Of a stretch of 64,000 bases of DNA, positions 49,667 to 56,998 are shown piece after piece. Position numbers and translations under genes: made by a program. Origin of the DNA: Thecamonas trahens ATCC 50062 (Eukaryota > Protista > Apusomonadida); NCBI RefSeq assembly GCF_000142905.1, contig NW_013657674.1, positions 29,787-93,786 on the forward strand. Direction: 5' to 3'. Each line of letters starts with the position of its first letter. Position 1 is the stretch's first letter. The notes beneath the pieces were generated by a model. It searched no databases. It was not told the origin of the DNA and saw nothing but the letters and a program-made list of their open reading frames with translations.

Positions 49667-52227
49667 ATGACGTCTTCATCTTCTTCTTCTTCGTCCTCGT
49701 CTTCTTCTTCCTCCTCCTCGTCGTCGTCGTCGGCTGCTTCGGCCTCGGCCTCAGCCTCCTCGTCGGCTTCTTGCGGCTCAGCATCGGGATCGGACTCGAG
49801 CTCGGGCTACGGTTCGGGCTCGGGCTCGGGCTCGTGCTCAGACTCGGCAGTGATGGGCCTTGGGCTGACGCAGGAGCAGATTGCCACCTTCCGGGTCAAG
49901 TTTGATGAGCTCGACGCCGACGGCTCGGGCTACATCACGGCCGACGAGCTGGGTGCGCTGGCGGCGGCGATTTCGACCGACGACGACGTGGCCGATGTCG
50001 ACGAGCTGATGGCCGAGGCCGACGTTGACGACGATGGCCAGATCTCGTTCTTTGAGTTTTGCAAGATCATGTCCGAGGCTCAGGCCGACAACTACCGGCT
50101 GATCTGGGAGGTCTACCGCTACGCCACCGGTGGCAGCGGCCTGCTCACCGAAAAGGCGCTGGGCAAGCTGATGAGCAAGGCGGGACGGGCCAAGTACGCC
50201 AAGTCCTCGGGATCGTCAATTGGCATGATCGACGAGGCCAACCTCCGCACGCTCCACGGCGTCAACCCGCTCTACACCCAGCAGGTGGCGGCGTCGGCCG
50301 ACCGCAGCGCACGCAAGAAGCTCATTTCAGTCCTTGAATCCGAGGAGCGCAAGGAGCTCTCGCTGGAGGCTTTCGCGCGTGCGCTTGGCCACGAGGGCAC
50401 CATCGACGAGCTCTCTGACCTCTCGGGCTCGGGCTCCGGTTCGGACACCGTCTCGGACAACGCGCCCAAGAGCCGCAAGCGCCGCGGTGGCCCCAAGCGC
50501 CGAGCCGGCCAGCGCGCCGGCGGTGTGCCCACCATTGCCGCTCATGAGTTCTTCCTCGGCAAGACGTACGACATCGAGTTCCAGCCGGCGCTCACCGTCA
50601 AGGAGCTGCACAAGGCTGTGGCCAAGGCTGCCGCCGAGCCCGTCGCCAACGTCCGCCTCTTCCACAACGGCTTTGAGCTCGAGGCCAAGGACGGGACCAC
50701 GTGCGGCGAGCTCGGCATGGAGGCGAACGAGACCCAAGTCCATGTCCTCTACCACCCGCGGACCAACAAGCTCTCGTGGGGCGACGCTGTCGGCGCCGAT
50801 GGCGAGCTGGACCTCGACGTCATCTTTAAGCACTTTGAGCACGAGGGTGCCATCTCGGACTCGTTTGCCAAAAAGCTGGTCAAGAAGGCGACCCGCCACT
50901 TTCAGGCCCAGCCGACCATGATCGAGGTCGCGGGCCCGATCACCGTCGTCGGTGACATCCACGGTCAGTTCTTTGACCTCCGCAACATCTTTGAGGCTGG
51001 CGGCGCTCTCGGCGACCGCAAATACCTCTTCCTCGGCGACTACGTCGACCGCGGCTACTTTTCGACCGAGACCGTGCTCTTCCTCCTCGCCGCCGTCCTC
51101 CGCTACCCGGACAAGGTCTTCATGCTCCGCGGGAACCACGAGTCGGCGTCGCAGGCCGCAAAGGCCTCCGGCTCCGGATCGGAGATCACCCGGAAGCTCT
51201 CGCAGAAGATGCTCGACTCGCTCATCAACATGTACCAGTCCATGTCGCCGTGCGCCCTTCTCGAGTCGACGCCTGGATCGGGCCACAAGTTCTTCTGCTG
51301 CCACGGTGGCATTGCCAAGGCCTTCCCCAAGGTCTCCAAGCTCGCCACCTTTGACCGCACACCCGAGGACGAGCGCATTGCTAAGGGCAAGCTCAAGGAG
51401 ATCATGTGGAACGATCCGGCGCCCGACCACGACTTTAGCGACGACGACGAGGCCCACCCAAGGGCTCGGACGCAAAGTGGCGCCTCGACAAGGTCGTCGA
51501 CGACGACGCTTCTGACTCGGCCTCGGGCGGAAGCTCCAAGCGCGATTGGGCAAAGTCCAAGCGTGGCCGCAACATCTACACCTTCTCGCTCGCCGCCACC
51601 AAGGCCTTCCTCGCCCGCAACAACATCCGCGGCATCATCCGCGGCCACCAGCAGAAGCCCGGCTACTCAGTCTCCAAGCCCGGCCCGTTTGGCATCCCGG
51701 CCGTTATCACCGTCTTCTCCGCCCCCAACTACGTTGACCAGTCGCTCGCCATGGGCGGCGTCGCCAAGTTTGACAAGGGCAACAAGCTCTCGCTCAAGGA
51801 GTACACCTGGTCCTTCCATCCCGTTTACCACAACGGCGCTCACCTGACCAAGCCGTTTGAGAAGAACTACGTCATGGAGGCCTTCCTCGTCTACCTCTCT
51901 CACTTCCATCCCAAGATCCTCAAGACCGTCTCGCTCGTCCACCTCCGCTCCACCATCGAGGCCCGTAAGTTCATCGCCGTCATGCGCGCACGTGGCCACG
52001 ACGTCACCCTCGCCGACCTGCAGGAGGCCACCTCGGACTGGGACTACCTCAAGGCTAACCTGCTCGAGGTCCTCTCCCACTCCAAGTCGCCCTCCGTCCG
52101 TGCCTTCCGCCGCGACAAGCTCAAGCGCAAGACCGGCTCCAACTGGGCCAAGGGCTTTGACCATCTCGCCTACTCGATCCTCGCCGAGGCCCAGAACGAG
52201 GTCGAGGAAATCACCTATGATGTCTAG
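49667..52227 (+). CDS. EF-hand + ubiquitin-like + calcineurin A-like PPP phosphatase (frameshift near 51455)
   Basis: EF loops DADGSGYITADE and DVDDDGQISFFE; Ubl-like LTVKELH..VRLFHNGFELE..TCGELGM; GDIHGQFFDL, FLGDYVDRGYFS, LRGNHE, HGG; after the shift RGHQ and ITVFSAPNY. Confidence 0.88.
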
Positions 52228-52360
52228 CTGCACAGCTGTTTGTTGTCACGCCCTGTGCCACCATCGCCCATCAACCACCATCCTCCTCGATAAATCCTAG
52301 CCCATCTCAGCCAAGCCCTTGCTCTGGCTGTGTCAGCCGAGATGGGGCCATGTCACTGTG

Positions 52361-55300
52361 ATGGCCCTATCTCAGCTGACACAGCCAGAGTCGCGATCCC
52401 CCGCCCACTGCCGGGACCACGCTCCCTCCCGCACCTACACCGACGAGCCGTCACGCCACTCATCTCCCCACTCCGCCTCTTCACACATGCCCCCACCCCC
52501 CTCTGGGACTGGCATGCATGGCCTCCCACGTCCATGGCGGCAACACCCGGCTCCGTGGCAGGCGTGTCTGACAAGAGCTGACGTTCGGTGCGTCGCATTG
52601 ATCCTTCTCCTGTCGGTGGTCATGGCTTCAGCTGGGGGCACTGCGAGCGGTCTGCATGGCAATGACGGGCGGCGGGGTGCTGGAAGCGATGATGCGCGTC
52701 AACATGTGGTTGTGATCGGTGCCGGGTATGCTGGGCTCTCGGCGGCGCTGGAACTGGCTCAACGAGGCTACAACGTGACGGTGTTCGAGAAGCTAGCCCA
52801 GGTCGGCGGGAGAGCCCAGGTCGTCACCTCGCCCGATGGCCGGTTTGTCTTTGATGCCGGGCCATCATGGTGGTGGATGCCTGAGCTGTATGATGCCGTA
52901 CTGGATCGATATGGCCTGGTTTCTCAGCTGGCGATGACTCGCCTCGATCCGGCGTACACTGTTGTGCTGCCGAACGAGGCCACCGTCCAGGTCCCGGGCT
53001 CGCTCCCGCAGCTGCTAGACCTGGCGGATGAACTTGATCCGGGCCACACTCTACGCGCACTCTTTGATGAGGCTAGTATCAAGTACAAGGCTGCCGTGGA
53101 CGAGTGGCTGTGGAAGCCGATGATCTCCTGGACCGAACTGATCGATCCGGGACTGGCGGCGGCGGCGCTTACGTCGGACATGCTTGGCTCTTTTGAGTCG
53201 CATGTGGCAGCACACACGGCCTCGCCACTTCTTCGCATGCTGCTCAAGTGGCCGGCGATTTTCATTGGCGCGTCTCCACGCGACGCCCCGGCGCTGTACT
53301 CGCTCATGACCTACGCGGGGCATGCCCGCGGAACATGGTACCCTGCGGGTGGACTCTCTGCGCCGGCGCGCGAGCTGGCGAACGCTGCTACGGCCGCCGG
53401 TGTGGTGATTCGCACTAACGAGCCTGTGATCAAGCTTAGTGCCACCGAATCGCACATTTCGTCGGTGTGTACTCCACAGCAGTGCGTCAGCGTCGACGGC
53501 GTTCTTGCGGCCGCCGACTACCACTATGTTGAGCAAGAGCTTCTCCCGCAGCATCTCCGGCGATACACATCGCGGTACTGGGCACGGCGGCAGCTCTCGC
53601 CATCGTGCATGCTCTTCTTCCTGGGTCTCGAGGAGGCTCTGCCGGGGCTCGGCCACCACACGTTCTTCTTTGACACTGGCCTCGACGAGCACCTGAGCCA
53701 AGTGTTTGACTTTGGCCAGCATGCGGCGGCGCCAACGTTCTACGTGACAGCGGCGGCGCGGACGGCTCCGGAGGGCGCGACTGCGCCTCCCGGCGGCGAC
53801 GCGCTCTTTGTTCTTGTGCCGATGGCATACGCTCTCAACGGGACCGACACGCCGGCGTTACGAGCGGCAGTCCTCGAGCAGGTGCTGGATCGCATGGATG
53901 CCCGGACGCCTCTGGCATCGGGCGCTTCTATCCGGAGTGTGCTTGCCTACAATGCGTCGTACGGGACTAGCGAGTTTGAGCTCGATTTTCATGCGCTCCG
54001 CGGCAACGCCTTTGGCCTCGCCAACATCCTCTCGCAGTCGCTGGTCTTCAAGCCGTCGATGACAAGTGGCGCACGCAACATGGTGTTTGCCGGGCACATG
54101 ACCAATCCTGGGCCGGGCGTGCCGCCGTCGATGATTTCCGGCATCGTCGCGGCAGGCGTGCTCGACGAACAGCTTTCCTCACACTCACATAGCACCGAGC
54201 TTGTGAATTTCATGCTGGTTGGCGCCAAGTGGGTGGCGTGCGGAGCAGTAGTGCTGCATGCGGCCGTGCTTGCAGCGGTCTTGCTCTCCACACGTGTTGC
54301 GTCGTACGCGCACTGCATCTCGCTGTTTTACCGACACGGGCGGACGTACTTTTTGGCGTCGACGCTTTTTGATCCGGTGCGGTTTGTGGATACGGCTGCC
54401 ATGTACGCCCTGTTCCGGGTTGCCGACGACTGTGTCGATGTTGTGGGTGCGAGCGCCGAGGCCAAGCGGGCTGCGCTGGGCAAGTTTATGGCCGCGTTCT
54501 GGGCCGGGCTTGAGGCGGGCGCAGGCGAGTATCACGAGCATCCCGTGCTTCCAGCGGTGATTGAGACGGTTCGCCGACGCGGATACTCGGCGAATTTGTT
54601 TGCCACCTTTTTCGCGTCAATGAGCATGGACGTGGAGACCAAGGTGTGCGAGACGTGGGACGAGACGTGGGAGTACATGCGCGGCTCGGCGGCTGTCATC
54701 GGCGACTTTATGCTCCCACTACTCATCCCGGGTGACGACGAGAAGGCAAAGAGAGCGCGAGCCAAGGCACTGGCCCATGCCCGCGATCTTGGGTATGGCT
54801 TTCAGCTGACAAACATGATCCGCGACATCGGCGAGGACCTGGAGCTCGGGCGCGAATATGTGCCGCGGGAAGAGTGCCGGGCACATGGGGTGACGCTTGC
54901 GGCACGCGCACCCGACGCGCCCGGGTGGCGCGGAACGATCGAGACGGTGATGGCCAAGGCCGAGGCTTGCTACGCGTCAGCAGACGTCGGAATTGCCATG
55001 CTGCCAGGCGATGTGAGGCCGGTGGTGGCACTCGCGCGAGCAATGTACTCGGAGTTACACCCTGCGATTCGAAGCGCCGAGTACAACGTGTTTAGCGGGC
55101 GTGTGGTTGTGTCTGGACGTCGCAAGCTGGAGCTTGCAGCTCGAATGGTACCGCTCCTACCACTGCTGCGGATAACGCTGGCCAAGACTTACGCCGCGGT
55201 GCTTTGTTGTGCTGTGGCTCTTGCCGAGCCTCTGGCTGGCGTTGCCTTTTTGGCGGCCGCGTTGAGCGAGTCGGAGAGGTGGATGCTGCCGAGCATGGTC

Positions 55301-56998
55301 TCCTACGCCGGGCTCCACGCCGTGGTCACGATTCCGCTTGTGTGTGGGGTGTGGGCTGTGGCGGTGCGCCGGGCGCCGACAAGACTCTTGGCCGCAGGCG
55401 GGATGTGGAGTGCAGCTCTGGCGCTGGTGGCGTTTGTGTACACGACGCCGTGGGACAATTACCTCGTGTATCGGCAGGTGTGGGGCTACGGTGGCGCTGC
55501 AGCTGTTGTCGGGGTGGTCGGCTGGGTGCCGGTCGAAGAGTACGCATTCTTTGTGCTGGAAACGCTGCTGGTGGGCGGCGTTTGGGTGGTGATGGCGAGC
55601 CAGAGCGATGACCGTGGCGAACAGCGGTGGAGTGGAGAGGCGGTTACGCGCCGGCGGCGGCTGGGGCTGGGAGTACTGGCCGGCGCGTGGCTGGCTGGTG
55701 CGCGTGCGGCGAGCGGCCGCGGGACCGAGTACCTGGGACTCATCGCAGTGTGGGCGTTGCCGGTGCTAGCGCTGCAGTGGGCGGCTGGCGCAGGAGTGCT
55801 GCTGCATGAGTGGCGGGTGTGGCTGCCGACAGTGGCGACGTCAGCGAGTGCACTGTGTGTGATCGACATGTGGTCGATCTCGCATGGGCTGTGGCGCATT
55901 GCGCCCGAGGCGTCGATCGGCGAGCTGGCACAGGATCTGCCTGTCGAAGAGGCGCTGTTTTTCGTGGTGACATCGACTATGTGTGCTTGGGGGCTCACAC
56001 TAGCAGTGGACGCATGCCGACGGGCCGAGGCGCGTGGCGTAGCGCTTACCGCAGTGGTGCTCGAGATGCTCATGCCGCCGACGAATGTGAGCAGTGAGAC
56101 CATGCTGGCAGCGTTTTCACACGGCATTGCAGCGACTGTGGTGCTTGCGTTGTGGGTTTGCGGGGCGGAGATCTCGCTCGAGTCGCAAGCGGCTGCGCTG
56201 GTGGTGACGACTTGCGCCATCGGGCTCCCGCATGGCGCACTGGACCCGCTCCTGGTGCTGTCTGGGGCGAGCTTTACTCGGCGTGCCGGTGGCATGGCTG
56301 CCAGCTGGGCCGTATATGTGGTGCTGATGGGTGCAATGTATGCTGTGTGGGAGGCAGCGCCTGTGGCAGCGCTCAGCCTATTTCTCGCGCTCTCGATCGC
56401 GCATTTCGGTGAAGGTGACGCCCCTGTAGGCAGCATGTGCGATGCAACGTGGCTCATTCATGCGATTGAGGTGTTTGCGCGCGGCGGAGCGTTTCTGGTG
56501 GCAACCACGACGCATCGGGCGCAGGTGGCGGCTGTGTTTGCCGACCTGGTGGATGGACAAGAACTTGGGATGCTGATGACGCTGCTCTCACTGTTGCGAT
56601 GGGCGCATTTCGTGGCGGTGGTGGGCAGCGCGGCGCGGCATGTTCAGCGGCTGGAGACGAGGGCGGCTGCGGTGGGCCTCGCGGACCTTGTTATGCTCAA
56701 CGTGCTGTTTGGGACGACGCCTCCACTTGTCGGGTTCATGGTGTACTTTAACGGCTTCCATGCGCTCCGGCACGTGGTGCGTGTCCAGACGCAACTCGCG
56801 CCGGCGATATTGTCGCGGTCAAGTCTCGGCGCGTGTGTGGTCGCCGCGATCGTTGCGGGGGCGTTTGTGGCGTGGCAGGCCGGCGGAACGTCGCTCGTGC
56901 ATGGCGTGTCAGGTGCAACCCGTGGAGTCTTTGTTCTCCTCTCTGTCATGGCTACCCCGCACATGGCGCTTGTCGCCTGCGCTGCTCTTCAGAGCTGA
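52361..56998 (+). CDS. Four-enzyme fusion CrtI-CrtB-CrtY(c/d)-Blh: phytoene desaturase / phytoene synthase / lycopene beta-cyclase / beta-carotene 15,15'-dioxygenase (start ATG uncertain: 52361, 52487 or 52514)
   Basis: CrtI: VVIGAGYAGL, FDAGPSW, GNAFGL, PGPGVPPSMISG. CrtB: HGRTY, ADDCVD, FQLTNMIRDIGED. CrtY: TTPWDNYLV, PVEEYAFF, PVEEALFF. Blh: IGLPHGALD, HFG, HALRH, PHM. One uninterrupted ORF. Confidence 0.93.
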   Translation: MALSQLTQPESRSPAHCRDHAPSRTYTDEPSRHSSPHSASSHMPPPPSGTGMHGLPRPWRQHPAPWQACLTRADVRCVALILLLSVVMASAGGTASGLHGNDGRRGAGSDDARQHVVVIGAGYAGLSAALELAQRGYNVTVFEKLAQVGGRAQVVTSPDGRFVFDAGPSWWWMPELYDAVLDRYGLVSQLAMTRLDPAYTVVLPNEATVQVPGSLPQLLDLADELDPGHTLRALFDEASIKYKAAVDEWLWKPMISWTELIDPGLAAAALTSDMLGSFESHVAAHTASPLLRMLLKWPAIFIGASPRDAPALYSLMTYAGHARGTWYPAGGLSAPARELANAATAAGVVIRTNEPVIKLSATESHISSVCTPQQCVSVDGVLAAADYHYVEQELLPQHLRRYTSRYWARRQLSPSCMLFFLGLEEALPGLGHHTFFFDTGLDEHLSQVFDFGQHAAAPTFYVTAAARTAPEGATAPPGGDALFVLVPMAYALNGTDTPALRAAVLEQVLDRMDARTPLASGASIRSVLAYNASYGTSEFELDFHALRGNAFGLANILSQSLVFKPSMTSGARNMVFAGHMTNPGPGVPPSMISGIVAAGVLDEQLSSHSHSTELVNFMLVGAKWVACGAVVLHAAVLAAVLLSTRVASYAHCISLFYRHGRTYFLASTLFDPVRFVDTAAMYALFRVADDCVDVVGASAEAKRAALGKFMAAFWAGLEAGAGEYHEHPVLPAVIETVRRRGYSANLFATFFASMSMDVETKVCETWDETWEYMRGSAAVIGDFMLPLLIPGDDEKAKRARAKALAHARDLGYGFQLTNMIRDIGEDLELGREYVPREECRAHGVTLAARAPDAPGWRGTIETVMAKAEACYASADVGIAMLPGDVRPVVALARAMYSELHPAIRSAEYNVFSGRVVVSGRRKLELAARMVPLLPLLRITLAKTYAAVLCCAVALAEPLAGVAFLAAALSESERWMLPSMVSYAGLHAVVTIPLVCGVWAVAVRRAPTRLLAAGGMWSAALALVAFVYTTPWDNYLVYRQVWGYGGAAAVVGVVGWVPVEEYAFFVLETLLVGGVWVVMASQSDDRGEQRWSGEAVTRRRRLGLGVLAGAWLAGARAASGRGTEYLGLIAVWALPVLALQWAAGAGVLLHEWRVWLPTVATSASALCVIDMWSISHGLWRIAPEASIGELAQDLPVEEALFFVVTSTMCAWGLTLAVDACRRAEARGVALTAVVLEMLMPPTNVSSETMLAAFSHGIAATVVLALWVCGAEISLESQAAALVVTTCAIGLPHGALDPLLVLSGASFTRRAGGMAASWAVYVVLMGAMYAVWEAAPVAALSLFLALSIAHFGEGDAPVGSMCDATWLIHAIEVFARGGAFLVATTTHRAQVAAVFADLVDGQELGMLMTLLSLLRWAHFVAVVGSAARHVQRLETRAAAVGLADLVMLNVLFGTTPPLVGFMVYFNGFHALRHVVRVQTQLAPAILSRSSLGACVVAAIVAGAFVAWQAGGTSLVHGVSGATRGVFVLLSVMATPHMALVACAALQS

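Follow-up and report, generated by a model that had tools for sequence, protein, structure and literature searches.

One Reading Frame of Thecamonas trahens Carrying Four Domains of a Predicted Route from GGPP to Retinal

The locus analyzed here raises the question of whether one gene of a non-photosynthetic flagellate, Thecamonas trahens, specifies the whole route from GGPP to retinal as a single polypeptide and, if so, how much of this was already known. Within the window (the whole stretch of 64,000 nt that was analyzed), an open frame of 1559 codons with no stops ran along the forward strand from 52319 to 56998 and was closed by the stop codon at 56996-56998; all coordinates given below are on the same strand unless another contig is named. 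Counted from its first in-frame ATG to the stop codon, the whole fusion ORF occupied 52361-56998 and encoded 1545 aa, in agreement with the single stop-free ORF that a first-pass annotation, made from the sequence alone, had placed there. The publicly annotated start lies at 52622 (M88 of the ORF), and the protein model that begins there (P0001, 1458 aa) was 100% identical to the ORF.

This gene is almost certainly the one behind the "quadrifunctional" CrtI-CrtB-CrtYc/d-Blh protein of T. trahens, XP_013761525.1, described by Rius et al. 2023 (Genome Biol Evol, PMC10016063), because the length of 1458 aa, the domain order, and the CrtB coordinates all agree. In the supplement of that paper the protein appears as A0A0L0DT58 of Thecamonas trahens, 1458 aa in length, and CrtB is placed at 571-833 (PMC10016063); the SQS_PSY match at 658-921 of our ORF corresponds to 571-834 when counted from the M88 start of the 1458-aa model. 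The role is also the same, since those authors proposed a direct cleavage of beta-carotene to retinal in T. trahens (PMC10016063). The published model and ours differ only in the proposed start, which in our case adds an upstream extension with a hydrophobic N-terminus. The four-enzyme fusion is therefore already known, the same protein having been published with the same reading in 2023 (PMC10016063), and the caution of the first-pass annotation that novelty needed checking was justified. The best overall explanation of the locus, to which we assign a probability of about 0.88, is that it is this published nuclear quadrifunctional gene, making retinal as one polypeptide.

Four enzyme domains and their catalytic motifs

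The ORF contained, in order, CrtI, CrtB, two-repeat CrtYc/d, and Brp/Blh domains, all of which exceeded the curated HMM cut-offs (TIGR02734, PF00494, TIGR03462, and TIGR03753, respectively) and retained intact catalytic motifs; the domain scores were far beyond chance. The first-pass annotation had given the same order, and its domain coordinates fell about 30 nt or less from the HMM boundaries. It had proposed a Pfam/HMM scan, in which Amino_oxidase, SQS_PSY, and BCD passed, and the cyclase was recognized through TIGR03462, with Pfam Lycopene_cyc (PF18916) remaining sub-threshold on the cyclase region (11.9 bits).

The CrtI-type phytoene desaturase domain (aa 116-609, 52706-54187) scored 313 bits with TIGR02734 (cut-off, 238), and Pfam Amino_oxidase matched aa 124-599 of this part (E = 7.5e-27). 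Its FAD motif, GxGxxG at aa 120 (nt 52718), was invariant across homologues. Among NCBIfam equivalogs, CrtID, a bifunctional phytoene desaturase/3,4-desaturase, fitted the CrtI part best, at a score below the cut-off (431 vs. 640 bits). By analogy with thraustochytrid CrtIBY, which yields beta-carotene, we infer that the domain would carry out the four-step desaturation of phytoene to lycopene. The CrtB phytoene synthase (SQS_PSY) domain (aa 658-921, 54332-55123; PF00494, 179 bits vs. a cut-off of 26, E = 1.9e-52) had both of the Asp-rich motifs that had been claimed for it, DDxxD at aa 689 (nt 54425) and DxxED at aa 822 (nt 54824), and the residues D689/D690/D693 and D822/E825/D826 were invariant in 10 of 10 aligned fusions.

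The lycopene cyclase consisted of two CrtYc/d repeats, at 55301-55573 and 55727-55993, which were placed by a six-frame genome search, the call itself resting on NCBIfam TIGR03462; this model matched the cyclase region in two stretches (95 bits vs. a cut-off of 39.4). Each repeat had a PxEE motif (aa 1057, nt 55529, and aa 1194, nt 55940, respectively), as the earlier reading of a two-repeat cyclase had it, and both motifs were invariant in the aligned fusions. The C-terminal Brp/Blh beta-carotene 15,15′-dioxygenase domain (aa 1280-1538, 56198-56974) scored 131 bits with TIGR03753 (cut-off, 95) and matched Pfam BCD (PF15461) over aa 1284-1539 (117 bits vs. 28, E = 1e-33). Four candidate Fe-ligand histidines had been pointed out in this domain, and we found five: His 1291, 1348, 1467, 1471, and 1534 (codons at 56231, 56402, 56759, 56771, and 56960). 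Their spacing (57/119/4/63) was like that of the iron-site histidines of the bacterial Blh 66A03 (57/110/4/64), namely His-21/78/188/192/256 (bioRxiv 10.64898/2026.08.06.743266).

With these domains, one membrane-anchored polypeptide would carry the four steps from GGPP to retinal: the CrtB domain would condense two GGPP to phytoene, the CrtI domain would desaturate phytoene to lycopene, the two-repeat CrtYc/d domain would cyclize both ends to give beta-carotene, and the Fe(II)/His Blh domain would cut the 15,15′ bond to release two all-trans-retinal. The ApuR channel and a histidine-kinase rhodopsin, the two type-1 rhodopsins of the cell, would then use this retinal as their chromophore. We consider it likely that the fusion protein converts GGPP to retinal in this way; the enzymatic activities, the retinal end product, and the single unprocessed polypeptide are what the sequence leads us to infer.

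Start codon and N-terminus

A signal-peptide-like hydrophobic segment (aa 77-88, 52589-52624; Kyte-Doolittle mean, 3.14) was located mostly upstream of the annotated M88. Before the FAD motif, a 12-residue hydrophobic window was present in 11 of 11 homologues with complete N-termini (Kyte-Doolittle mean, 1.8-3.6), and the annotated 1458-aa T. trahens model had no such window (0.37). A signal-like hydrophobic N-terminus is therefore probably lost from the model with the annotated start, and the true start is probably one of the in-frame candidates upstream of M88, that is, M52 (52514), M43 (52487), or M1 (52361). The longer N-terminus was favored because the homologues conserve the hydrophobic segment, and this was the sole basis for the choice: GC3 and codon log-likelihood were also calculated over 52361-52621, where the stretches are too short to tell coding from non-coding sequence. 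The signal-like or anchor segment is a conserved feature of the family, which Rius et al. 2023 do not discuss (PMC10016063). Hydropathy, and hydropathy only, also predicted one or two membrane spans in the linker between CrtI and CrtB (aa 614-648, 54200-54304). The N-terminal segment and this linker bear on the topology of the fusion protein.

Genomic setting, pathway partners, and transcripts

The gene is intronless and encodes bacterial-type domains, as would be expected if a bacterial operon had entered the assembly by contamination or by chimeric mis-assembly. Against this, a 631-kb contig holds the gene between ordinary eukaryotic genes, an EF-hand/ubiquitin/calcineurin-like phosphatase upstream and a Ras-like GTPase downstream. 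Its GC3 of 0.71, admittedly a crude measure, was no outlier when set beside the remaining long frames in the window (0.69-0.84), the domain junctions were reproduced by independent contigs of other runs, and homologous fusions had eukaryotic neighbors as well. We regard contamination or mis-assembly as having next to no chance of being correct. Codon style was also considered as a footprint of transfer, and was rejected as such because the GC3 lay within the range of the neighbors.

Searches of the genome (28.7 Mb, 131 contigs) were then used to place the published quadrifunctional gene among possible pathway partners. The Blh domain of the fusion was the sole Blh of the genome, and no CrtYc/d cyclase repeats were found elsewhere in a six-frame search of the 28.7 Mb. 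Four polyprenyl synthase genes were present (one type-III GGPP synthase, two FPP synthases, and one of the solanesyl-PP type); the GGPP synthase was located at C1:462977-463708, and its best PDB match was human GGPPS (E = 2e-89). The genome also encoded two type-1 rhodopsins, both with the DxxxK Schiff-base lysine and both on contigs other than that of the fusion. The first was a 1075-codon frame combining rhodopsin, HisKA, and receiver domains. The second, stand-alone and with an in-frame intron-like insert, is the published apusomonad rhodopsin channel ApuR (PNAS 2025, PMC12557545). The genome search for type-1 rhodopsins and GGPP synthase suggested by the first-pass annotation therefore returned two of the former and one of the latter. 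Substrate supply and chromophore users are thus encoded, which supports the retinal-pathway reading without proving activity. The four-enzyme interpretation offered at first pass, from GGPP to retinal, was supported by these partners together with the intact motifs, and it is the same as that of Rius et al. 2023 (PMC10016063).

A second oxygenase was identified in the same genome, an intact 636-aa ORF of the RPE65/CCD family (E = 3e-107), the best solved relatives of which were carotenoid 9,10-dioxygenases; it adjoined a eukaryotic-type carbonic anhydrase gene. Rius et al. 2023 reported T. trahens as the only one of six taxa without Rpe65 (PMC10016063). Contrary to that reported absence, an RPE65/CCD-family gene is present in the T. 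trahens genome. Its relationship to carotenoid 9,10-dioxygenases lends some weight to the view that the pathway does not end in retinal, the Blh domain being inactive or cleaving differently, or beta-carotene or other carotenoids being the main products and serving the separate CCD-family oxygenase, and so does the 3,4-desaturating type of the nearest CrtI equivalog, although that match was below cut-off. The Blh domain nevertheless had its five conserved histidines with native spacing and a TIGR03753 score above cut-off, rhodopsins that need retinal are encoded, and Rius et al. came across no record that T. trahens accumulates pigment (PMC10016063). We consider a product other than retinal improbable, and retinal is retained here as the predicted end product.

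Read contigs were compared with the sequence over 5301 letters, and no splice joints were seen over the ORF. Contigs of runs X3 and X4, which carry the same organism label and may be DNA libraries, spanned the CrtI-CrtB junction (53256-55050) and the CrtB-CrtY junction (54327-55821), and there was no coverage at nt 56012-56061 of the CrtY-Blh linker. The RNA libraries X1 and X2 (marine and subsurface metatranscriptomes) each gave 3-4 fragments of 151-184 nt that were ≥99% identical, which fits the Thecamonas-like rhodopsins reported in Tara Oceans data (PMC12557545). Among the relatives, the whole four-domain frame was present on transcript-derived contigs, namely Trinity isoforms of Namystynia and a 5.2-kb Logan contig (L002) with a sequencing adapter at its 5′ end.

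These data bear on whether the fusion exists at the DNA level only, with the mRNA or the polypeptide processed into separate enzymes. Such processing would be in keeping with the hydrophobic and low-complexity linkers between the domains, with the short fragments that were all the metatranscriptome libraries yielded, and with a marine eukaryote-like contig (L013) that had an in-frame TGA between CrtI-CrtB and CrtY-Blh. The frame runs unbroken for 4.6 kb, however, and the same order was found free of stops in at least six other lineages at 35-47% identity, including the transcript-derived contigs; conservation of a stop-free order at such low identity speaks for selection to keep the domains fused. 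Separate mature enzymes are accordingly given little credence here, slightly less than a product other than retinal, and a single polypeptide is preferred.

Relatives of the fusion and its significance

The CrtY-Blh half was searched against 1.8 billion representative proteins, and the matches were then checked for domains. The four-domain order was found in at least six further lineages, with 35-47% identity and no stops: P0002 (from a Logan run), P0004 (GCA_014466275.1, beside WDR19 fragments), P0006 (EukProt, the ichthyosporean Chromosphaera perkinsii), P0009/P0157 (EukProt, the diplonemid Namystynia karyoxenos), P0010 (an environmental cluster with 11 members), and P0011 (on a contig with Snf7 and protein-kinase neighbors). 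Of the seven four-domain lineages, six kept the catalytic residues, and in the remaining one, P0010, residues other than His were aligned at three Blh positions. A "two-domain" cluster, P0012, was set aside because it probably results from prokaryote-style gene calling on a eukaryotic gene with introns. Rius et al. 2023 found the architecture in T. trahens only, in a database that did not include these further taxa (PMC10016063), and we found no report of a four-domain fusion in other lineages in the literature searched or in that paper.

A branch with an SH-aLRT of 100 divided the CrtY-Blh tree, with every four-domain protein to one side and seven CrtYc/d-Blh-only proteins of about 600-645 aa to the other. 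The latter group included P0037, whose gene is on a bacterial contig of 2.37 Mb, and a cluster drawn from Chloroflexota MAGs (MEM6280810.1 = P0022). These bacterial two-domain proteins correspond to the last two domains of the fusion in the same order, but have neither CrtI nor CrtB.

Other systems resembled the fusion in part. Fungal CarRA/CrtYB also joins a two-repeat CrtYc/d-type cyclase to phytoene synthase, in reversed order (cyclase N-terminal), with CrtI and the cleavage oxygenase encoded by separate genes and the oxygenase belonging to the RPE65 family rather than to Blh. Thraustochytrid CrtIBY (P0003 of Aurantiochytrium sp. KH105; Aurli_150841 of A. limacinum) has the same CrtI-CrtB-CrtYc/d order, aligned with 72% of the query at 46% identity, and shares the hydrophobic N-terminus and the catalytic motifs, but has no Blh domain, and its product is beta-carotene, as a knockout demonstrated; in Aurantiochytrium the knockout identified CrtIBY as the only route to carotenoids (PMC10016063). 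Bacterial proteorhodopsin-linked crtE-I-B-Y-blh clusters encode the same four steps to retinal, often beside an opsin (PMC10016063). Those steps are separate genes of an operon in bacteria, whereas in T. trahens they are joined in one polypeptide and the opsins are on other contigs.

The origin of the fusion from a collapsed bacterial operon is plausible. Rius et al. 2023 argue for horizontal transfer from Actinobacteria, Bacteroidetes, or Archaea and leave the donor unsettled (PMC10016063). In a quick whole-protein tree, three- and four-domain proteins were interspersed and the backbone was not resolved; this tree, which has no root, is compatible with either gain or loss of Blh. We put forward, at somewhat less than even odds, a broader proposal in which the four-domain "retinal synthase" is a module found widely among heterotrophic eukaryotes and directed to the endomembrane system, thraustochytrid CrtIBY arose from it through loss of Blh, and the public T. 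trahens model is N-truncated.

For T. trahens itself, one gene leading from GGPP to retinal would explain how a non-photosynthetic flagellate charges its rhodopsins without dietary carotenoids, and the fusion gene would offer optogenetic or retinoid engineering a compact candidate cassette; the 2023 paper had already made both points for this protein (PMC10016063). The additions made here to that paper are modest: a probable mis-annotation of the N-terminus, further occurrences of the four-domain order, the bacterial CrtYc/d-Blh fusions, and the RPE65/CCD-family gene. The wider distribution, which extends to an ichthyosporean, a diplonemid, and environmental eukaryotes of marine origin, suggests that heterotrophic protists make their own retinal more commonly than the six-taxon set implied.

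Distribution of the four-domain fusion

The CrtI-CrtB-CrtYc/d-Blh order of the T. trahens protein was also found in the ichthyosporean Chromosphaera perkinsii (P0006, EukProt), the diplonemid Namystynia karyoxenos (P0157, EukProt), NCBI assembly GCA_014466275.1, one Logan run, and two environmental lineages. The fusion loci in these lineages were L001:3368-7768, L002:195-5192 (the Logan contig), and L014:6366-11045, and the proteins included P0010, an 11-member environmental cluster. Rius et al. 2023 (PMC10016063) made no mention of a four-domain fusion in any of these further lineages.

A candidate split four-domain gene was located on a marine metagenome contig of 42% GC (L013:4600-9857), with a KDEL-receptor gene near the fusion parts. 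Its CrtI was broken by an intron-like stretch (GTAAGT...CAG), and one TGA, adjoining a GTATGT, divided CrtI-CrtB from CrtY-Blh, both parts being in one frame; the CrtY-Blh half clustered with the four-domain proteins. This is probably an intron-bearing four-domain gene cut in two by prokaryote-style gene calling. Two-domain CrtYc/d-Blh fusions (approximately 600-645 aa) were present in bacteria: one at L012:8001-9821, on a contig of 2.37 Mb, and others from MAGs of Chloroflexota (P0022, MEM6280810.1). These proteins formed a group apart from the eukaryotic fusions.

Start codon and metatranscriptome fragments

A hydrophobic signal-like N-terminal segment was present in all 11 homologues with complete N-termini. 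The T. trahens counterpart lies in the same frame just upstream of M88, the public model start at 52622 (segment and upstream in-frame sequence, window positions 52514-52624); the true start is thus probably upstream, and the annotated M88 too far downstream. Fragments of the fusion gene at least 99% identical to it occurred in one marine and one subsurface metatranscriptome run (X1 and X2), matching window positions 55330-56514 and 52113-54267, which suggests Thecamonas-like cells or RNA in the environment, or library-to-library carry-over.

Other retinal-related genes and three-domain relatives

T. trahens was stated to be without Rpe65 (Rius et al. 2023, PMC10016063). Its genome contains an intact 636-aa RPE65/carotenoid-cleavage-dioxygenase ORF (L015:1456-3366, minus strand; G000 contig 15:136793-138232), the best solved relatives of which were carotenoid 9,10-dioxygenases. 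The retinal lysine was kept in both T. trahens rhodopsin genes, a rhodopsin-HisKA-receiver fusion (L010:2616-5843) and the apusomonad rhodopsin, which stands alone and carries an intron-like insert (L011:3080-4252).

A CrtI-CrtB-CrtYc/d fusion was also observed in the photosynthetic amoeba Paulinella micropora (P0108, EukProt, 1560 aa). Another protein (P0007, ENA, 1944 aa) combined a three-domain CrtIBY-like part with an additional C-terminal region, whose His-box-like motifs resembled those of carotene hydroxylases. If that region is hydroxylase-like, P0007 would be a four-part fusion of a different kind.
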